DNA of 64,000 nt. Source: Cyanophora paradoxa CCMP329 (Eukaryota > Plantae > Glaucophyta). The translations under genes were made by a program, and so were the position numbers. The stretch covers positions 620,001 through 684,000 of the forward strand of contig QPMI01000039.1 in assembly GCA_004431415.1 (NCBI GenBank), read 5' to 3'. Under the pieces are notes generated by a model. That model did not search any database. It saw only the letters and a list, made by a program, of their open reading frames with translations, and had not been told where the DNA came from. Shown one piece after another: positions 1 to 24,857 of this stretch. Within the stretch, counting starts at the first letter, position 1. Every line of letters begins with the position of its first letter.

Positions 1-354
1 GCGGCATCTTCGTGAATGAGAACGGGCGGGGCACGGTCGAGGGCAACGACGTCTACGGCAACGCGCTGGCGGGCATCGAGATCCGGGAGGGCTCGGACCC
101 CGTCTTCAAGGGCAACCGGTGCGCCCTGGAGCTCCTCTGTGCCTAGTCCCTCCACATCTCCTCCGCCCCTGACACCCGCCCCCCGCAGGGTGCACGACCA
201 GAAGTACGGGATCTGCGTGCGAGACGGCGGCAAGGGCACCATTTCTGGGAACACGCTCGAGCGCATCTCGGACCCGTCCTACGCGCCCTGCAGCGGCGTG
301 AAGGTCCTCGACGGCTGCACCCCGGCCGTGCAGGGGAACACGTTCCGCCAGTAG
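1..354 (+). CDS. 3' end of beta-helix repeat gene A, copy 1 (N-terminal module lies outside the window)
   Basis: Reads GIFVNENGRGTVEGNDVYGNALAGIEIREGSDPVFKGNR, then GT-AG intron 119-188, then VHDQKYGICVRDGGKGTISGNTLER...QGNTFRQ* (stop 352-354). The last exon matches the last exon of copy 3 (24017-24181). Confidence 0.9.
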
Positions 355-8785: not shown

Positions 8786-9167
8786 ATTGATCGCAACTGC
8801 CACGGCTCCCTGGGCCCTTCCACGCGGCGGAGGCGCGTGCGGCGGGTCATTCGAGCGCGGGTGCATCCGTACCGGTGCGCACAGCCGAGCGAATCACCAA
8901 GGCCGAAGTTTCATTAGCGTATTCATGTTTCGTGTTCTCTTTCCGGCAGAACGAACGAGCTTGGCTCTCCTCTAAGCGGCTGGCCGTCTTTGGCAGGCCG
9001 GGGCCGCCACGACCGAGATCCGGTCATCGGCCACCCCGCACACGCCTAGCTTCTTCTTGTGAAGGTGCAAGCGTCCCGTAAATTCGTCTAATTAGCGACT
9101 GCAGCTGACGCGTATGGGTTAGCTTGGCTTCCGATAGCCGGCGGCGGCGCCCTTGCAATCAAGCTCA

Positions 9168-12100
9168 ATGGACTTCCTCGGGACGCTGCAGGGCATCATC
9201 GACGTGCGCCCGCAGCTGCGCCGCTGATCATGATCATGATCACATGTACAGGCACTGATCAGATCCCCGTGCGCGGCGCCGCGGCCGGCAGGTTGCGCTG
9301 CGGATCAAGGAGCAGGCGGACGCCGCGAAGGCGAACCGCGCGAAGTGCTCCCGCCTCGCCCGCCGCGTGGCCGACCTCGCCCCGGCCCTGAAGCGTGCGC
9401 GCGCCGCGCGCCGCTGCCGCGGCCGTCTGGTCGACTTGGCTGACGCGCGCGCGCAGAGGTGAAGGCGCGGGGGGCGCCGAAGGCGGGGACGCGGGAGGCG
9501 GAGGCGGCGGAGGGGGCGGCGGGGAGCCTGCTGCAGGCGGCGCGGGAGGCGGAGGCGCTGGTGGCGAAGTTCGGCGGGCGCGGCTTCATGATGCGCTTCA
9601 TCAAGGCGGGGGACGACGCCGCGGCCTTCGAGGAGGCCCACTTCGCCATCGACCGCGCCTGCGCGACCCTCACCGCCTGCACCCTCGTCAAGGCCCGCAC
9701 CACCGCCGCCCGCTCCCTTCCTTAAGCTCCCTTGACGTGGCGGACGGGCCGGGCAGGTGGAGGCGGCGGCGGCGACGGCGGCGGAGCGGGCGGAGGACGA
9801 GCGGGAGGACCGGCGCGCCATGCAGAAGCTCCTCGCCGACTTCCAGGCCTCCTTCGGCGACTTCCGGTGCCCGGCCCCGCCTCCCCTGCCGCCCCGCCCC
9901 GCCGCGCCCCGCCCGAGCGGCGTCCCGGGCCGGGGGCGCAGGGAGGAGTACCGGCAGGACCAGCAGGAGCTGGTGGACGCGCTGCGCGGGCTGCGGCTGC
10001 AGGGGCAGACGACGGGCGACGGCGAGCTCCGGGGCCGCCTCGGCGCCATCGAGGGCCTCCTCCGCCAGCTCGCCGGTCCCGCCCGCGCCTTCTTCACGCT
10101 CCAAAGCCTTACGGCCTCGCAATCTGACGACCCCGCAGAGGGCCGCCCAGCGTCCGCGCCGCCGGCGCCGCCGCAGCGGCCCGTGCGCGTCTCGGGGGCG
10201 GTCGGGCCGAGCCTCATCCGCGACAGCGAGCTTCAGGCCCGCCCGGCGCCCCGGCGCCCCGGCGCGCCCACAAAGGCGGCGGCGGCGCCTCCTGACAGCC
10301 CGGCGCGCAGGTGCGGTGGAAGGAGCGGCCGCTGGGAGAGGGCGCCATGGGCCGCGTCTTCCGCGGCGACTGGCTCGGCCTTCCCGTCGCCGTCAAGAAG
10401 GCCCGCCCCGCCCCGCCGCATCGAGACGGGCGGCGCGCCGAGCGGGGCGGGGGCGGGGGCGTAGGTCACGGTGGGGATGAGCGAGGCGGCGCGGCGCGAG
10501 GTGGACCGCGAGTGCGCCGTGCACGCCGCCCTCCGCCACCCCAACATACTCCAGGCCCGCCCCCGCCCGCCCCCTCCCGCCCTCGTCCGCCGCGATTAGA
10601 TGCCGGCGCGGCGGCAGTTCTACGGGGCGTGCGTGCGGACGAGCGAGGAGGAGGAGGACAGCGTGCTGATCGTGACGGAGCTCGCCGAGGGGGGCACCCT
10701 CGCCGACCACGTCCGCTCGCCGGCCTTCCGGCGGCTGCCGCCGGCCGAGCGGGCGGCCCTCCTGCTCCCCGTCGCCCGCGCCCTCCAGTACATGGCCTCC
10801 CGCGCCAACCCCATCGCCCACGGTCCGCGCCGCCCGACCCCACGCGCGATGCGCTGCGGCCGAGCCTCGGGGGGGCGGCGGGGGCGCAGGGGACCTGAAG
10901 CCGGCGAACGTGCTGATGGTGGGGGCGGCCCCGAAGCTCGCCGACTTCGGCCTCTCGCGCCTGCGGGTGGAGACGCTGCGCTCCCGCACCTCCGTCGGGG
11001 GCACCCCCAACTACGGCCCCCCCGTGCGCCCCGCGGCACTCGCCTGCACCGCCCCGCCGCTCCGAGCACGGGCGCCCACGCCGGGCCGCGCAGGAGCTCT
11101 GGTCGCCGGGCTTCTTCCCGAGCGAGGCGGCCGACGTCTTTGCCTTCGGCTACCTCCTCTGGGTCCGCCCCGCCCCGGCCCGCCGCCGCCGGCTTCTCAG
11201 CTCCAGGCGGGGCGACAGGAGGCGCTGAGCGGGGAGGAGCCGTGGGCGGGCCTCCTCCCGCAGCAGGTCCTCAAGCTCGTCTGCCAGGAGCGCCGGCGGC
11301 CGGCCGTGGACGCTTCGTGGCCGCCCCCGCTGCGCGCCCTGCTCGCCGCCTGCTGGGAGGAGGATCCGGCCCGCCGCCCGCCGTTCGCCCGCGTCGTGCA
11401 GGCGCGTGGGAGGCGATCGCCGCCACTTGCAAGCCGCCGCAAGGGGGCGATGCATATGCGGGACTGATGCTGGGCGACAACGCTGCGCGCAGCTGCTGGC
11501 GGCAGCGACGGAGGAGCCGGCGCCGCGCCCGAGCCCCGCGGCCTCAAGCCCCCTTCCTGTGTGCCTTTGCCCCTTTGCTTGGCTCAGCAATCCCGCCCTG
11601 AGGCCCCGCAGGAGCTGAGCGTGCGGCCGGGGGAGAGCGTCGCGGCCGCCGTGGCGCGGGCCGCCCCGGGGCAGACCGTCCGCATCCAGCCCGGCCGGCG
11701 CGCCCCGTCCCCGGCCCCGAGCCGCGCCTCGGGCCGACCCGGCCCCGCAGGTACGAGGAGCAGCTGGTGCTGGACAAGGCGGTGCACGTCGTCGGGCCGC
11801 GGGAGGCCGTCCTCAAGTGGGACCAGGGCCCTGCCACAGTGCACTGCAAGGGCCCCGCGGCGCCGAGCGTCAAGGGCATCACGATCCGCAACACTGCGCC
11901 AAAGAAGTCTGCGGTGTGGATCACGGACGGGAGCCGGGCGGTCGTGGAGGGCTGCGACGTGTCCAGCGCGGGCCTCAACGGCATCGATGTCAAAGACGAG
12001 GGGACGGCCCCGACGCTGCGCGGTGGGCGCCCCGCCCCCGCCCCCTGCCCTCCGTTTGACCGATTCCGTGCTGCGCAGGGAACGCGGTGCACGACTGCGG

Positions 12101-13290
12101 CGGGGGGGGCATCGTCTTCCACACGTCGGCGAAGGGCGTCGCGGAGGGCAACGACGTCTACGGCAACGCGCTCTCGGGCATCGTGATCGAGACCGGCGCG
12201 GACCCCGTCGTGCGGGGCAACAAGGTCCACGACGGCAAGGAGGCCGGCATCCTCGTGTTCGAGAACGGGCGGGGCACGGTCGAGGGCAACGACGTCTACG
12301 GCAACGCGAAGTCGGGCATCCAGATCTCGATCGGCGCTGACCCCGTCGTGCGGGGCAACACGGTCCACGACGGCAAGGAGGGCGGCATCTTTGTGTACGA
12401 GAACGGGCGGGGCACGGTCGAGGGCAACGACGTCTACGGCAACGTGAGCACGGGCATCGCAATCAAGACCGGAGCGGACCCCGTCGTGCGGGGCAACAAG
12501 GTCCACGACGGCAAGGAGGCCGGCATCCTCGTGTTCGAGAACGGGCGGGGCACGGTCGAGGGCAACGACGTCTACGGCAACGCGAACTTGGGCATCGTGA
12601 TCCAGACCGGCGCTGACCCCGTCGTGCGGGGCAACAAGGTCCACGACGGCAAGGCGGGCGGCATCCTCGTGAATGAGAACGGGCGGGGCACAGTTGAGGG
12701 CAACGACGTCTACGGCAACGTGCAGCCCGGCATCGGGATCTCGACCGGCGCTGACCCCGTCGTGAAGGGCAACAAGGTCCACGACGGCAAGCAGGGCGGC
12801 ATCTTCGTGTGTGAGAACGGGCGGGGCACGGTCGAGGGCAACGACGTCTACGGCAACGCGTTCTCGGGCATCGAGATCAAGACCGGCGCGGACCCCGTCG
12901 TGCGGGGCAACAAGGTCCGCGACGGCAAGCTGGAAGGCATCTTTGTGTACGAGAACGGGCGGGGCACCGTCGAGGGCAACGACGTCTACGGCAATGCGCT
13001 GGCGGGCATCCAGATCAAGACCGGCGCGGACCCCGTCGTCAAGGGCAACCGGTGCGCCCTGGAGCTCCTCTGTGCCTAGTCCCTCCACATCTCCTCGGCC
13101 CCTGACACCCGCCCCCCGCAGGGTCCATGACCAGAAGTTGGGGATCGTCGTGCGAGACAGCGGCAAGGGGACCATCTCTGGGAACACGCTCGAGCGCATC
13201 TCGGACCCCGAGTTCGCAGTGAAGTGCAGCGGCGTCTGGGTACAGAGCGGCTGCACCCCGGTCGTGCAGGGGAACACTTTCCGCCAGTAG
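9168..13290 (+). CDS. Gene A copy 2: MLKL-like four-helix bundle + brace/coiled coil + TKL-type protein kinase + FBXO11-type right-handed beta-helix (~17 exons)
   Basis: Spliced N-terminus MDFLGTLQGIIDVALRIKEQADAAKANRAKCSRLARRVADLAPALKQV...AAREAEALVAKFGGRGFMMRFIKAGDDAAAFEEAHFAI. Kinase motifs LGEGAMGRVF, VAVKK, HPNILQFYG, HGDLKPANVL, DFG, GTPNYGPPE, DVFAFG, CWEEDPARRP. Then ELSVRPGESVAAAVARAAPGQTVRIQPGRYEEQLVLDK and ~7 46-aa repeats. Confidence 0.88.
12147..13050 (+). repeat. 138-bp (46-aa) intron-free coding repeat array, ~6.5 units
   Basis: Unit GNDVYGN-xxx-GIxIxxGADPVV(R/K)GN(K/T)VHDGK-xx-GIxVxENGRGTVE; scaffold DNA is nearly invariant between units. Confidence 0.95.
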
Positions 13291-13987
13291 CGCTAGCGCT
13301 CAAGTTTTGTACGCGAATTGATGAAGTCCTCCGGCCGCCGGCTCGAATCCAGGCAAGGCTGACTCGGAGAGAGCGAGCCCGATGCCAATCGCTATGGCGC
13401 GGATTGCGATCGACGTCGACGGCCGCGGACATGGCCGACGGATGGAGAGGAGCAAACTGCAATACGCGGAATCGGCGGGGCCGCGAACTCCAAGCCGCCA
13501 GCGCACCCGGCCGATGAGAAGAGTCGCCCGCGCCTCGACCTCCGAGCCCGGAGCCCCGCGGCAAGAGAGGACCGCAGCTTCGGTCATATTTACTATATAT
13601 TTGCTAGTTTGTCAAGCGAGAGGCACCGGTGGCGTACGCGTGGTCGCCTGGCCGCGCCGCGGCCGGTGGGAGTGGCCGGCCATGTGCTGGCGAGCTCCCG
13701 CGGGCAGTTTGAGCTCGGCGACGCATCCGATGGTGCCTATGCGCCACCCGGCCACTCCGCCCCGCGCGCCGCCCCGCGCGCGCCTTGGCCCCCAGCATGA
13801 CAAGATGGGCCGGGGTCAGTACTAGTCTGCTGCGGTGCTGGCGGCGGCATGCACCTGGCAAAGTCCACGATCATCGTGGGCATCGGCTCCCGCGGGCAGC
13901 TCGAGCTGGGCGACGCATCCGATGGTGCAATGTGCCGCCCCGCGCGCCGCCCCGCGCGCGCCTTGCATTGGCCCCTGTGCCGCTAAC

Positions 13988-19973: not shown

Positions 19974-21672
19974 ACGGCCACACAAGCGCTTGGCCGTGAG
20001 CAGCATGCGGAGCTCTCTCTCTTATTACATTACTTTCTCTCATCTACTCCTCTACTAAAGTTAGCCATAGTAGTCATGTTTTACACGCCGTGGCGCTATG
20101 AATTAGTATACGTACTTAGCTTCGACGTTAACAAGTAATGCGTATACGTAATGTATGCATGCGCAATTTTAACAGTTACAGCTTTAGATCTGGATTACTT
20201 TCAACAGGGCTACCTGTTTTGCGACTTCATTCGACGGGGTCTGGTGAGGGCGGGCGCCGGGCGGGAGGGCGGGCGCCGGGCCCCGGGCCCCTCTCCGGGC
20301 TCCGGGCTCGGCGCTCGTGCGCCGCCGGCGCCCCGGGCGCCTATCATAGTGCGACGACGGGTTACGCAGGCGGCCCCTGGCCGAGGGCGGGGAACCTGGC
20401 CGAGGTCGGGGGCAGGACCTGGCCGAGGGCGGGGGAGGAGGAGGGGCGGGGGGGCGCCGGCGCCGGCGCGGCCCGCGCGCTCCCCTCCGCCGGCCCGCGC
20501 CGGTCCCGGGGCGGGCCTCCGGGGCAGAGGATGACGGGGAGGCGGGGGCCGGCGCCGGCGAGCGCGGCGCCGGCTCCACTGAAGCGGCGCCGCGCATGCG
20601 CAAGGTCGGCGGAGGCGCCGGCGCCGCTGAGGCCTCCGGGCTGTCCTGCCGCCGCGCCGGGAGGCCTGGGGACAGCGGCTGTTCTCCGCGCACGCGGCGC
20701 CGGCACCGATCGACTTCACCTGCCGCCCCGTCGCGACGGAACGCAGCGGCGGCGCAACGGCGCGCGGCGGCGAGGGCGCGGCGGCACGCGGCGGGACTCG
20801 GGCGAGCGGCAGCGGATGGCGCGGGGCCTGCGCGGAGCCGGAGACCGCGTCGTCGCCCGCGGTTAGCGCGGCGGCGCTGCGCGGTGGAGGACCCTCCGGA
20901 AAGAATCAAACGGACGCACCGATCGTCCTCCATGCCAGCTCCCGCCTCGCGCCCGGCAGCAGCGCGGCGAGCGCCGGTCCCTCTCATGAGAGGAGTCGCT
21001 GGAGTGTGCGGGGGACGAGCACTCTGCGCATACAGCGGGGAAGTTTCAACGCCGCGGCGCTGCGCGAGGCCTACAGCGGGGCTTGCCCTCGCCTTGGATT
21101 CTAACCTTAGAGGCTTGGACAGCCTAGGACGTCGACTATTACATCTCTTAGCTTGTATAGAGCCGCAAGCGGCGGCGGCGGCAGGGGCCAGGGCCAGGCT
21201 AATGGCAGGCTTGGAAGGGGGGGTAGAGGGCGGTTGGGTCGCGACTGCGTCAGCACATCGAGAGGCACACGCGGCGGAGGCGCGCTCGGCGGATCATTAG
21301 AGCACGGGCGGAACCGTACTGGTGCGCGCAGCGCGAATCACCGGGGCCGAAGTTTCATTAGCCTTTTCATGTTTCGTGTTGCTCTTTCCGGCTGAGCGAA
21401 CGAGCTTGGCTCTCCTCTAAGCGGGTAGTTTCCTTTGGCAGGCCGGGGCCGCCACGACCGAGGTCCGGTCATCGGCCGCCCGGCACGCGCGCGCCTATAG
21501 CTAGCTATCCCAATTTGCAACCGTTTAGCTGCTAGCGCTTAGGCCGACAGCTGCAGCTGCTCATGATCATAGACTCTCTTCGGAAGTTCCCCTTCAAGGC
21601 TTCGCCTAGCGCCGTTACCCATGCGCGGCGCGGGTGTGTGCGCAGCGCTGGCGGCGGCCCGCGGCCGGGGCG

Positions 21673-24181
21673 ATGGCGGCGGAGAGCTATGACCTCTTCC
21701 TCTCCCACAAGCAGAGCACGGGCGGCGACCTCGCCGGCCGCATCAAATCCGAGGTCCGCCCCCGTCGCCCGCCCGGCCCGCCCGCCCGGCCGGTTCGAGC
21801 TCCGCGGGCGCAGCTGGAGGTGCTGCGGCCGGGGATCCGCGTCTTCATCGACGTGGACGCTCTGGGCGACATCCACGACCTCGCGGCCGTCATCCGCAGC
21901 ACCCGCTGCTTCGTCCTCATCATCACGCCCGGTGCGCCGCGCGCGCCCGCACCAAAGAGAGCTCGATTCATGATCATCGCCCGCCGCTGCTTATATAATT
22001 ACGCGCGCTCGCTCGCGCCGCAGAGTGGCTGGAGAGCCTGTTCGTCCTGCGGGAGCTTGCCACCGCCGTCCGCGCGCAGCGCCGCATCCTCATCGTCTGG
22101 GACCGCGACCGGCTCCCCAACTTCCCCCAGAGTGCCCCCGCCCCCCAGCCGCTCTCCCGGCGGCCGCCGGGCTGTTAACGTTAAGGCGGCTGCAGTCGAC
22201 TCGCGGACGGTGCTGCCACGCATCGACGAGATGGGCGACGCCGAGCTGCGGGGGACCCTGCAGCGCGTCCTCATGATCAAGGCCCGCCTCGCTCGCCCCG
22301 CCGGCCCCGCTGCGCCCGGCGCGAGGGGCGGCGCAGGCGATTCCGTACATCCGGGAGAAGGCTTTCCGGGAGACGGCGCTGCGGGAGATCCTCCAGCGCT
22401 TCGACGCCGCCCAGCCCTTCCGCATGGACGCCGCCCCGGCCCCCGCCCCGGCCCCCGCCCCCATCAACCACGGCGCTGCGGCTGTGGTGCGCCGCGCGCG
22501 CCGCCGCTCAGCGGCTGCGGCTGCGCGGCGAAGTGACGCGGGGCGGCAGGCGGCGGACATGGCGCGCCTCTCCGTCTCCGTCCGCCCCCCCACCCCCCGC
22601 CCGCCCCGCCCTGCCGGCCCTGAGGCCCCGTAGGAGCTGAGCGTGCGGTCGGGGGAGAGCGTCGCGGCCGCCGTGGCGCGGGCCGCCCCAGGGCAGACAA
22701 TCCGCGTTCAGCCCGGCCGGTGCACATGCGTCCCTTCCCCGGCCCAGAGCGGCCCCTCGGACCGACCCGGCGCCGCAGGTACAAGGAGCAGCTGGTGCTG
22801 GACAAGGCGGTGCACGTCGTCGGGCCGCGGGAGGCCGTCCTCGAGTGGGACCAGAGCCCCACGCTGCACTGCAAAGGGCCTGTGGCGCCGAGCGTCAAGG
22901 GCATCACGATCCGGAACACGGGGCCGAAGAATGGGACACTGTGGATCACGGGCGGGAGCCAGGCGGTCGTGGAGGGCTGCGATGTGTCCAGCGCCGGCAT
23001 GAACGGCATCGAAGTCAAAGACGACGGGACGGCCCCGACGCTGCGCGGTGGGCGCCCCGGCCCACCCCCGCCCCCTGCCCTCCGTTTGACCGATTCCGCG
23101 ATGCGCAGGGAACGCGGTGCACGACTGCGGCGGGGCGGGCATCTTCTTCTACACGTCGGCAAAGGGCGTCGCGGAGGGCAACGACGTCTACGGCAACGCG
23201 AACTCGGGCATCCAGATCAGTGAGGGCGCGGACCCCGTCGTGAAGGGCAACAAGGTCCACGACGGCAAGGCGGCCGGCATGTACGTGCTGGAGAACGGGC
23301 GGGGCACGGTCGAGGGCAACGACGTCTACGGCAACGCGAACTCGGGCATCGCAATCAAGACCGGCGCGGACCCCGTCGTGCGGGGCAACAAGGTCCACGA
23401 CGGCAAGCAGGGCGGCATCCTCGTGTACGAGAACGGGCGGGGCACGGTCGAGGGCAACGACGTCTACGGCAACGCGAAGTCGGGCATCCAGATCTCGATC
23501 GGCGCTGACCCCGTCGTGCGGGGCAACACGGTCCACGACGGCAAGGCGGGCGGCATCCTCGTGAATGAGAACGGGCGGGGCACAGTTGAGGGCAACGACG
23601 TCTACGGCAACGTGCAGCCCGGCATCGGGATCTCGACCGGCGCTGACCCCGTCGTGAAGGGCAACAAGGTCCACGACGGCAAGCAGGGCGGCATCTTCGT
23701 GTGTGAGAACGGGCGGGGCACGGTCGAGGGCAACGACGTCTACGGCAACGCGTTCTCGGGCATCGAGATCAAGACCGGCGCGGACCCCGTCGTGCGGGGC
23801 AACAAGGTCCGCGACGGCAAGCTGGAAGGCATCTTTGTGTACGAGAACGGGCGGGGCACCGTCGAGGGCAACGACGTCTACGGCAATGCGCTGGCGGGCA
23901 TCCAGATCAGGGAGGGCGCGGACCCCGTCGTGCGGGGCAACCGGTGCGCCCGCGAGCTCCTCTGTGCCTATAATCCCCCCGCATCTCCTCCGCCCCTGAC
24001 ACCCGCCCCCCGCAGGGTGCACGACCAGAAGTACGGGATCTGCGTGCGAGACGGCGGCAAGGGCACCATTTCTGGGAACACGCTCGAGCGCATCTCGGAC
24101 CCGTCCTACGCGCCCTGCAGCGGCGTGAAGGTCCTCGACGGCTGCACCCCGGCCGTGCAGGGGAACACGTTCCGCCAGTAG
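21673..24181 (+). CDS. Gene A copy 3: SARM1-like TIR domain + FBXO11-type right-handed beta-helix
   Basis: Spliced MAAESYDLFLSHKQSTGGDLAGRIKSE|LEVLRPGIRVFIDVDALGDIHDLAAVIRSTRCFVLIITP|EWLESLFVLRELATAVRAQRRILIVWD...KAIPYIREKAFRETALREILQRF. A Pro/Ala linker follows, then ELSVRSGESVAAAVARAAPGQTIRVQPGRYKEQLVLDK and ~6 repeats. Confidence 0.9.
23177..23942 (+). repeat. 138-bp (46-aa) intron-free coding repeat array, ~5.5 units
   Basis: Same scaffold as 12147-13050; several units are identical to units of that array. Confidence 0.95.
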
Positions 24182-24857
24182 CGCTTGAATTGTGTTTGTC
24201 CTAGCTATGGTTGAATTGTGTGAAGTCCTCCGGGCGCTGGCTCGAATCCAGACAAGGCCGACTCGGAGAGAGCGAGCCCGAGGCCAATCGCTATGGCGCG
24301 GATTGCGATCGACGTCGACGGCCGCGGACATGGCCGACGGATGGAGAGGAGCAAACTGCAATACGCGGAATCGGCGGGGCCGCGAACTCCAAGCCGCCAG
24401 CGCACCCGGCCGATGAGAAGAGTCGCCCGCGCCTCGACCTCCGAGCCCGGAGCGCCGGGGCGAGTCGAGAGGACTAGAGATTCGGTCAAATTTCCTATTT
24501 GCTAGTTTGTCAAGCGAGAGGCACCGGTGGCGTACGCGTGGTCGCCAGACGCTCCACTGGGCCATCGATGATCAGTCGCGGCCCTGGTCGCCTAGATCAG
24601 CCTAATTATAAGCCATCAGACGCCGTTGCGGCAGCGCGCCTTGACGCTGACGGATCTGAACGCTTACCAGTATGGATCATGGATCAGTACTAGTCTGCTG
24701 CGGTGCCGGCGGCAGCACGCACCTGGCGAAGTCCACGGCCATCGTGGGCATCGGCTCCCGCGGCCAGCTCGAGCTCGGCGACGCATCCGATGGTGCCTAT
24801 GCGCCGCCTGGCCCCTCCGCCCTGCGCGCCGCCTCGCGCGCGCCCCGTGCCGCTCAC

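Follow-up and report, generated by a model that had tools for sequence, protein, structure and literature searches.

A Cyanophora paradoxa nuclear gene joins a SARM1-like TIR domain to a right-handed beta-helix

We asked what is encoded by a locus of the glaucophyte Cyanophora paradoxa at which a TIR domain appeared to be joined to a beta-helix, and whether that TIR domain is likely to cleave NAD+. The locus lies in a window of 64,000 nucleotides, which is the whole stretch of DNA that was analysed. It holds a nuclear gene of this organism that is both intact and transcribed, spanning 21673-24181 on the + strand, with a frame that is open through all ten coding exons. The 642-aa product is the EukProt protein tig00000157_g9717.t1 (P0121), on which 10 of 10 exon translations were placed at the expected offset. 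In RNA-derived contigs from runs X1 and X3 (two studies) every intron of the gene was removed, while an independent DNA run of 2012 (X15) contained the same stretch unspliced. The introns flanking exon 2, of 60 nt (exon 1/2) and 92 nt (exon 2/3), were exactly skipped in the X1 and X3 contigs and the exon that bears the glutamate is therefore in frame, a matter that the sequence-only reading of this DNA had left to cDNA. The features of the locus are as follows.

21321..21644, + strand, GT-AG intron of the 5'UTR (joint 21320->21645 in RNA contigs from X1 and X3)
21491..22613, + strand, TIR "cassette", which, unlike the rest of the locus, matched none of the neighbouring beta-helix genes in the window at the DNA level (blastn query 21300-24700)
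21673..21753, + strand, coding exon 1, Met1-Glu27, with TIR box 1 (YDLFLSH) and the start of helix alphaA (RNA contigs, P0121)
21814..21931, + strand, coding exon 2, residues 28-67 with the last codon split, carrying strand betaB (VFIDVD), the short BB loop and strand betaC (RNA contigs, P0121)
about 22024..22131, + strand, coding exon 3, residues 67-103, carrying helix alphaC, in which lie Phe73 and Glu77 (putatively catalytic; codon 22053-22055), and strand betaD (RNA contigs, P0121, SARM1 alignment)
22196..22281, + strand, coding exon 4, residues 103-131, alphaD region (RNA contigs, P0121)
22282-22336, + strand, GC-AG intron 3' of exon 4 (RNA joint 22279->22335, with 4 ambiguous letters, compatible with GC..AG)
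22337..22486, + strand, coding exon 5, residues 132-181, TIR betaE and alphaE followed by the Pro/Ala-rich linker (RNA contigs, P0121)
22550..22579, + strand, 30-nt micro-exon, residues 182-191, inside the linker (X3 record 15, P0121)
22634..22719, + strand, coding exon 7, residues 192-220, N-terminal beta-helix cap (RNA contigs, P0121)
22779..23047, + strand, coding exon 8, first coils of the beta-helix (RNA contigs, P0121)
23109..23943, + strand, coding exon 9, beta-helix repeats (repeat analysis)
24016..24181, + strand, coding exon 10, C-terminal coils and cap (RNA contigs, P0121)

The second transcript exon starts at 21645, 28 nt 5' of the ATG, and the stop codon TAG lies at 24179-24181. 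The micro-exon was placed from 29 letters of X3 record 15 that are flanked by the sides of joint 22487->22634 and match 22550-22579. Long open reading frames on the opposite strand (e.g. 23015-24565, 516 aa) were dismissed as a by-product of the 70-79% G+C content. Exons 1, 2 and 3 translate to the three motifs that the sequence-only reading had quoted, and the TIR exons fall within 21673-22430, where it had put the domain. Its proposal that a TIR domain and a right-handed beta-helix share one transcript agrees with the RNA contigs, P0121 and Pfam; the description "fused directly" was borne out in that no domain intervenes, and a Pro/Ala-rich linker of ~35 residues alone joins the two.

The TIR domain was assigned to residues 1-160, with the Pfam match starting at residue 6 (6-155 of 642). 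Pfam TIR_2 (PF13676, STIR clan), whose gathering cut-off is 28 bits, matched residues 1-200 with 30.6 bits (E 5e-7) and the whole 642-aa protein with 27.6 bits, slightly below that cut-off; the PADLOC profile SAVED_TIR gave 28.5 bits. Single exons searched with Pfam gave no TIR match, the pieces being too short, and a DUF6112 match on an in-frame read-through of exons 1-2 was set aside as spurious. In a profile search of the PDB, the best 19 sequence matches were all SARM1/TIR-1 (top E 4e-9). The AF2 model of the domain (pLDDT 94.1, pTM 0.90) placed strands at residues 6-11, 37-39, 57-64, 87-93 and 133-135 with helices between them, a flavodoxin-like beta-alpha fold, and the top 34 Foldseek matches to this model were again all SARM1/TIR-1. 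VIA-align superimposed residues 5-154 of the model on residues 561-700 of human SARM1 with Z 17.7 (rmsd 1.9 Å over 128 residues, 27% identity), followed by the SPARTA TIR (Z 15.2) and RUN1 (Z 15.1). Relatives numbered 1237 at E <= 1e-3 among 1.84 billion representatives, which, with the Pfam and PDB E values above, puts the match well outside what chance would give. Overall, residues 1-160 are a TIR domain whose subfamily is widespread in microbial eukaryotes; among solved structures the NAD+ hydrolase domain of SARM1/TIR-1 comes closest to it, in sequence as well as in predicted fold.

The glutamate of the (W/F)VxxE(I/L)xxA helix is the NADase catalytic residue in SARM1 and in plant and bacterial TIRs. 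The sequence-only reading had taken this residue to be retained, and in the profile alignment Glu77 does fall on the glutamate of SARM1 VHKE(642)I and TIR-1 VHKEL, the alphaC position that RUN1 Glu100 also occupies. Glu77 is at least 90% conserved among 54 relatives and invariant in four Cyanophora paralogues, and in the betaB motif FIDVD the Asp is also kept. At the pocket, SARM1 Trp638, Asp594, Glu596 and Lys597 correspond to Phe73, Asp40, Asp42 and Ala43, respectively, and SARM1 Tyr568-Arg569-Arg570 is His-Lys-Gln in the Cyanophora TIR. The BB loop is 3 residues shorter than that of SARM1, with Gly45 present. Three BB-loop residues of SARM1 were reported to be important for catalysis (PMC7075850), and two of the three are altered in the Cyanophora TIR. 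A homodimer prediction using two copies of residues 1-165 scored 0.02, a value that counts neither for nor against self-association. By analogy with SARM1, we infer that the Cyanophora TIR would have NADase activity.

Toll-like receptor adaptors signal by TIR-TIR recruitment, and an alternative is that the domain is a non-enzymatic assembly or adaptor module that recruits other Cyanophora TIR proteins, the conserved glutamate having a structural or binding role. The partial retention of the SARM1 BB-loop residues is consistent with this, as is the existence of further Cyanophora proteins in which the same TIR type stands alone (P0122) or with other partners (P0160, 1069 aa), and the animal scaffold TIRs MyD88, IL-18R-beta and TLR15 fit the model at Z 14-14.5. 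However, the conservation of a glutamate at the catalytic position across the subfamily argues against an adaptor, as do the best sequence and fold matches, which are all NAD+ hydrolases (SARM1 and TIR-1, then SPARTA and plant TIR NADases), and the scaffold adaptor TIRAP reached only E 0.12 in the PDB profile search. We consider this explanation unlikely.

Some plant TIRs have 2',3'-cNMP synthetase/nuclease activity, and the Cyanophora TIR might likewise be an enzyme whose substrate or product is something other than NAD+ depletion, either supplying a downstream effector with cyclic ADPR isomers or acting on nucleic acids as a 2',3'-cNMP synthetase/nuclease. Plant TIRs, including the DNA-bound TIR of flax L7, were among the Foldseek structural matches, and phylogenetic similarity of TIRs does not predict their product (PMC13142454); SARM1, the closest relative, nevertheless mainly hydrolyses NAD+, and we regard this second alternative as distinctly unlikely.

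The domains that Pfam found in the protein were TIR_2, Beta_helix (PF13229, 338.6 bits) and NosD, with nothing beyond TIR and beta-helix. AF2 predicted a right-handed parallel beta-helix of regular three-strand coils (pLDDT 93.2), with strands over residues 192-641. Exon 9 contains 5.6 copies of a 138-nt (46-aa) unit at 23174-23941, which are 87% alike and have zero indels. Each 46-residue repeat is a double coil with an almost invariant scaffold, and at least three different residues were seen at 7 of the 46 positions (10, 14, 17, 33, 34, 37 and 39), so that the variation falls on the same three or four positions per 23-residue coil. Codon differences between the units were 89 nonsynonymous versus 20 synonymous, counted over five units, which are insufficient for a formal selection test; gene conversion that homogenises the scaffold while neutral differences persist could also produce this pattern. 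The nearest solved beta-helices were alginate epimerases, PL6 lyases, glucanases and phage tailspikes.

Given these matches, the beta-helix might be an enzyme or glycan binder instead of a receptor. Together with the NosD hit they bear on a further alternative, in which it is a carbohydrate-active or glycan-binding (CASH-type) module that works on an endogenous polymer in a housekeeping, cell-wall or NAD-metabolic role outside immunity. We find this alternative improbable. The TM-scores to those solved structures were low (0.2-0.6) at 10-17% identity, and no signal peptide or membrane segment was seen when the protein sequence was read by eye, which makes a location at the cell wall unlikely. 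Moreover, the family has duplicated recently, exchanged domains and varied at specific positions, as conflict genes typically do and housekeeping enzymes do not.

The surroundings of the gene contain its close relatives. In blastn comparisons within the window, 22614-24546 was 88-91% identical in DNA to 11592-13648, 23828-24675 was 92% identical to 3-851, and an upstream block at 21300-21490 was 87% identical to 8853-9045. The DNA block common to the paralogues begins at 22614, 20 nt upstream of exon 7, and the 55 residues of exon 10 are identical to the last exon of a paralogue at the left edge of the window (187-351). The neighbouring gene carries the same beta-helix and upstream blocks with a different N-terminal module. 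At least five Cyanophora proteins join the SARM1-like TIR type with the beta-helix; the sister proteins bear EP00741_Cyanophora_paradoxa accessions, the TIR_2 scores of the paralogues are 24.7-28.6 bits, and two paralogues have a WW domain between TIR and beta-helix. The gene probably originated by exon shuffling inside this young local family. A young, shuffling family, together with some RNA contigs that stop or diverge within introns (loose ends at 21952 and 22507), might suggest a pseudogene or an artefact of assembly or annotation, but this is exceedingly improbable given the open frame over ten exons, the splicing of all introns in two studies, the independent DNA run and a product identical to the public gene model.

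Overall, the explanation that we favour as a whole, to which we give about an even chance, is by analogy with known TIR systems a one-piece TIR NADase with a beta-helix sensor, acting in defence or regulated cell death. The beta-helix would serve for binding, perhaps of a ligand that is polymeric or repeated (a glycan or a pathogen protein, for instance), and ligand binding would draw the TIR domains together. The clustered TIRs would then form composite active sites of the sort that SARM1, plant TIR receptors and bacterial TIR effectors form, and these sites would cleave NAD+, resulting in its depletion or in the production of an ADPR-type signal, so that the protein would be sensor and effector in one. 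The sequence-only reading had proposed such a chain, from ligand-induced clustering through the beta-helix to NAD+ depletion or a cyclic-ADPR-type signal. A broader version, possible but doubtful, is that of an NLR-independent modular receptor repertoire. In it, exon shuffling at a phase-0 intron and a common 5' block would have combined one young beta-helix sensor, which evolves in concert and bears a variable stripe, with different effectors of death or alarm; TIRs clustered by ligand would cleave NAD+, and eukaryotes would have arrived independently at the TIR-beta-helix design of bacteria. The effector modules in such a repertoire would comprise the SARM1-type TIR NADase, the different N-terminal module of the neighbouring gene and, in other copies, TIR plus WW.

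To our knowledge, no studied eukaryotic immune receptor uses a beta-helix as its sensor. The gene provides a test case in a glaucophyte, an expressed and structurally confident fusion of a SARM1-like, putatively catalytic TIR with a beta-helix, with no NB-ARC switch between them. Because neighbouring genes have this sensor attached to other modules, the cluster could reveal how the shuffling of effectors and sensors yields new receptors. Should the TIR prove active, SARM1-type NAD+ cleavage would extend to Archaeplastida outside land plants, with the bacterial TIR-beta-helix proteins as a natural counterpart for studying convergent design. An atlas of eukaryotic TIRs from 2026 described several wholly eukaryotic clades as uncharacterised and found SARM1-like sequences in few protist groups only (PMC13142454). 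We searched the literature for TIR combined with beta-helix, and for TIR in Cyanophora or glaucophytes, and found no description of this architecture.

Among known systems, the TIR of SARM1/TIR-1 (NAD+ hydrolase; PDB 6o0u, 9mw2 and 8p2m) is the best match in sequence and fold; it and the Cyanophora TIR have box 1, the FIDV(D/E) strand and, within the xVxxE(I/L)xxA helix, the catalytic glutamate in common. The term "SARM1-like" in the sequence-only reading thus holds for the TIR domain and does not extend to the whole protein. SARM1 has ARM and tandem SAM domains, both of which Pfam did not find in the Cyanophora protein, and its TIR is C-terminal, whereas that of the Cyanophora protein is N-terminal. 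The 8-residue insert before Trp638 in SARM1/TIR-1 faces a gap in the Cyanophora TIR, box 1 has SH instead of SY, and the BB loop, E(R/K)LEAG in the SARM1 group, is the shorter D-A-L-G. Without ARM/SAM, the insert and the group's BB loop, and with an N-terminal TIR, the protein was rejected as a SARM1 orthologue (ARM-SAM-SAM-TIR; group 24 of PMC7075850); more than 150 cluster representatives are nearer to its TIR than SARM1. The TIR's own family is an uncharacterised microbial-eukaryote subfamily with the consensus YDxFxSH...IFLDVDDL..IH...FVxxEL, comprising 114 representatives at E <= 1e-10 (e.g. Phalansterium solitarium EP01116_P005825 and haptophyte clusters), in which Phe9, Ser11, His12, Phe38, Asp40, Glu77 and Ala81 hardly vary; in the ESM Atlas, eukaryotic TIR_2 clusters are the nearest. 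The partner domains of other members are Sel1, WD40, kinase, UBA, ZZ or TRP-like, some members having none at all, and among the matches listed the beta-helix partner occurs in Cyanophora members only.

Bacterial and archaeal TIR_2-Beta_helix proteins (500-620 aa; e.g. P0002, P0005, P0031 and, from Streptomyces, A0A7M3NKZ6, which the supplement of PMC13142454 lists) have the same order, an N-terminal TIR, a linker and a PF13229 beta-helix with cap, a combination that is common in bacteria. The Cyanophora beta-helix is homologous to theirs (E 1e-123, 44% identity), and PF13676 was present in a large share of its best 120 matches. In contrast, their TIR is of a different subtype, with flax L6/L7 and bacterial TIRs and not SARM1 as its best solved relatives; the Cyanophora TIR profile scored at most 13.5 bits on it, and in a tree a branch with 98% support separated the Cyanophora TIRs from the prokaryotic ones. 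Because the TIR subtypes differ, either the architecture was assembled twice or the TIR was replaced, and acquisition of the whole architecture from bacteria in one piece was rejected as the simplest reading; the beta-helix alone may have been transferred from bacteria. Plant TIR-NLRs (RUN1, RPP1 and Roq1) and bacterial TIR effectors (SPARTA TIR-APAZ and TIR-SAVED) are fold matches at Z 14-15, and the logic common to them, a sensor with a TIR NADase activated by oligomerisation, would apply to the Cyanophora protein by analogy. Unlike them, it has no NB-ARC/STAND, Argonaute or SAVED module, and its repeat sensor is a beta-helix on a linker alone.

The window is rich in G+C (58-79%) and its genes bear introns. 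The peptide stretches quoted by the sequence-only reading proved to be real, as the motifs come from translation of 21673-21753, 21814-21930 and 22026-22133, three exons parted by introns of 60 nt and 92 nt, both GT-AG. Splicing was evaluated using RNA-derived contigs from two runs of two studies (X1 and X3), and the features of the gene were as follows.

Spliced features of the TIR-beta-helix gene
21321-21644, + strand, 5'UTR intron, skipped in spliced contigs of X1/X3
21754-21813, + strand, intron, skipped in spliced contigs of X1/X3
21932-22023, + strand, intron, skipped in spliced contigs of X1/X3
22132-22195, + strand, intron, skipped in spliced contigs of X1/X3
22282-22336, + strand, 55-nt GC-AG intron within the TIR coding region, spliced in X1/X3; GC..AG fits the joint, which has 4 ambiguous letters
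22550-22579, + strand, in-frame 30-nt micro-exon in the linker, carried by X3 record 15 and included in the public gene model
22720-22778, + strand, intron, skipped in spliced contigs of X1/X3
23048-23108, + strand, intron, skipped in spliced contigs of X1/X3
23944-24015, + strand, intron, skipped in spliced contigs of X1/X3

X3 record 15 carries 29 extra letters between 22487 and 22634 that match the micro-exon, which lies between a 63-nt and a 54-nt intron, both GT-AG. Since genomic 21441-22287 is present unspliced in the 2012 DNA run X15, the genomic sequence is confirmed. The spliced RNA contigs also rule out an out-of-frame position in the cDNA for the exon carrying the putative catalytic glutamate. 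When whole codons were compared one by one, all 10 exons lay at the exact expected offsets in P0121, the 642-aa EukProt protein of this gene (tig00000157_g9717.t1), and the gene product is an intact, expressed protein; a pseudogene or artefact is thereby essentially excluded. Sister proteins named in the same way have EP00741_Cyanophora_paradoxa accessions, which assigns P0121 to the glaucophyte Cyanophora paradoxa. Single-letter variants were found on separate RNA or DNA contigs at 22649 (T>C in X1, X3 and X15), 23412, 23427 and 23446, and in one contig the exon at 22634 was joined to a different upstream sequence; these contigs are probably transcripts of a paralogue or allele almost identical to this gene. 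In one contig of a further run, X9, 23929 and 24015 are joined across 13 other letters, with 4 mismatches; its most likely source is the last repeat of a paralogue, and an alternative isoform of this gene is the less likely reading. All six frames contain very long ORFs, such as one of 516 aa antisense to the beta-helix (23015-24565, - strand); we rejected these as genes and attribute them to the G+C content of 70-79%.

The DNA similarity of the gene to the rest of the 64-kb window was examined by blastn. The beta-helix exons with their introns and 3' flank (22614-24546) match 11592-13648 in the neighbouring gene at 88-91% identity, 23828-24675 matches 3-851 in the left-edge TIR-WW-beta-helix gene (P0028) at 92%, and the 5'UTR exon with the start of its intron (21300-21490) matches 8853-9045 at 87%. 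The 1.1-kb TIR cassette (21491-22613) has no blastn counterpart within the window, and homology with the neighbour restarts 20 nt upstream of the phase-0 acceptor at 22634. Such a pattern is what recent duplication leaves behind when the N-terminal module is exchanged by exon shuffling; the 87-92% blocks, shared with two other beta-helix genes of the window across introns and flanks, point to recent duplication, gene conversion and N-terminal exon shuffling, and the beta-helix genes form a young, shuffling family.

By the generic Pfam model the TIR is divergent (TIR_2, 30.6 bits for residues 1-200 and 27.6 bits for the whole protein; cut-off 28). In a search of all PDB sequences, the 19 best matches were all to SARM1 or to TIR-1, its orthologue in nematodes, and a profile of four Cyanophora paralogues matched TIR-1 over positions 4-142 at E 4e-9, the next family being TIRAP at E 0.12. 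In the profile alignment, Glu77 (codon 22053-22055) falls on Glu642 of the SARM1 VHKEI motif and on the Glu of VHKEL in TIR-1, and Phe73, Asp40 and Asp42 pair with Trp638, Asp594 and Glu596 of SARM1. The AlphaFold model of the domain, built with a 54-sequence alignment as input (pLDDT 94.1, pTM 0.90), returned SARM1/TIR-1 in all of the top 34 Foldseek matches against the PDB; VIA-align superposed model residues 5-154 on SARM1 561-700 (Z 17.7, 1.9 Å, 128 residues, 27% identity), ahead of SPARTA TIR-APAZ (Z 15.2) and plant RUN1 (Z 15.1). The PDB matches, the predicted fold and the alignment of Glu77 thus support well the earlier description of a SARM1-like TIR with a retained catalytic glutamate, as far as the domain is concerned. 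Phe9, Ser11, His12, Phe38, Leu39, Asp40, Leu50, Glu77 and Ala81 are nearly invariant in the 54 sequences, which makes a glutamate at the catalytic position a family hallmark.

A profile search run exhaustively on 1.84 billion representatives yielded 1237 relatives at E <= 1e-3 (114 at E <= 1e-10), the closest being Cyanophora paralogues, followed by proteins of other microbial eukaryotes (e.g. Phalansterium) and metagenomes, among which the partners of the TIR are Sel1, WD40, kinase, UBA, ZZ or TRP-like domains. In the ESM Atlas the nearest clusters are those of eukaryotes, and among the PADLOC models the TIR of TIR-SAVED effectors fits best. Further proteins have this TIR type internally: P0160 (Cyanophora, 1069 aa), with no other Pfam match, and P0163 (1535 aa), with a large WD40 array.

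The TIR ends near residue 155 and is followed by a Pro/Ala-rich linker containing the micro-exon, with the beta-helix cap starting at residue 192. As had been proposed, the fusion is direct, in that no other domain lies between TIR and beta-helix; in the paralogues P0028 and P0018 a WW domain occupies this place. The beta-helix scores 338.6 bits with Pfam Beta_helix, and the AlphaFold model of 185-642 (pLDDT 93.2) has regular three-strand coils throughout. Exon 9 consists of 5.6 tandem 138-nt units, 87% alike and free of indels, with codons mostly identical across the five complete units. The codon differences between these units are 89 nonsynonymous versus 20 synonymous, and positions 10, 14, 17, 33, 34, 37 and 39 of 46 carry three or four residues each. 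Since the variable positions mostly recur with the 23-residue coil (10/33, 14/37, 16/39), they should align along one face, and the variation is compatible with a variable binding stripe, five units being too few for a formal test.

Among the 120 best beta-helix matches (proteins of 500-620 aa from bacteria, archaea and metagenomes), a large share have PF13676 and/or PF01582 N-terminal to PF13229. TIR-beta-helix is a common prokaryotic architecture, and a Streptomyces example is in the supplement of PMC13142454. The prokaryotic TIR, however, is of another subtype: the Cyanophora TIR profile scores at most 13.5 bits on these proteins, the TIR of the example P0002 has its best matches in flax L6/L7 and in TIRs of bacteria, not in SARM1, and in the tree a branch with 98% SH-aLRT support parts the Cyanophora from the prokaryotic beta-helix-linked TIRs, the former grouping together (87%). 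The design therefore either was put together independently or had its TIR replaced. In some of these uncharacterised prokaryotic proteins (P0002-P0120) a caspase (PF00656) or CHAT (PF12770) domain replaces the TIR on the same helix, some TIR_2/TIR plus Beta_helix members are named 'F-box protein 11' by JGI, and PADLOC's candidate system PDC-S66 gives a weak match to the TIR of this large family.

By analogy with SARM1, plant TIR-NLR resistosomes and bacterial TIR effectors, self-association of the TIR would be needed to form the active site, and the beta-helix would provide it through ligand binding. On this analogy the TIR is somewhat more probably than not competent as an NADase; ligand-induced clustering as the trigger is a tentative proposal. 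Of the competing explanations, one holds that the TIR, for all its conserved Glu77, is a scaffold only. A second holds that the beta-helix is carbohydrate-active or housekeeping: the nearest solved beta-helices act on polysaccharides (alginate epimerases, PL6 lyases and phage tailspikes, at low TM-scores and 10-17% identity), and such relatives settle the modelled fold, not function. A third assigns the TIR other chemistry.

The gene model is already public in EukProt with precomputed Pfam domains, and a 2026 preprint presents a eukaryote-wide TIR atlas made from EukProt (PMC13142454), so the sequence itself is not new. Our literature search found no description of a TIR-beta-helix receptor or of Cyanophora TIRs. 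Set against known sensor-TIR NADases, the putative design differs in its unusual sensor and its lack of a STAND switch, and it comes from a lineage in which no such protein has been studied. Compared with SARM1, the Cyanophora TIR has an 8-residue gap opposite the insert before Trp638, and its BB loop is shorter by three residues; Glu596 is conservatively kept there (Asp42), Lys597 is lost (Ala43 in its place) and a Gly is present. Because Pfam finds no ARM or SAM domain and the TIR is N-terminal, this is no orthologue of SARM1; in SARM1, ARM and SAM domains are present and the TIR is not N-terminal.
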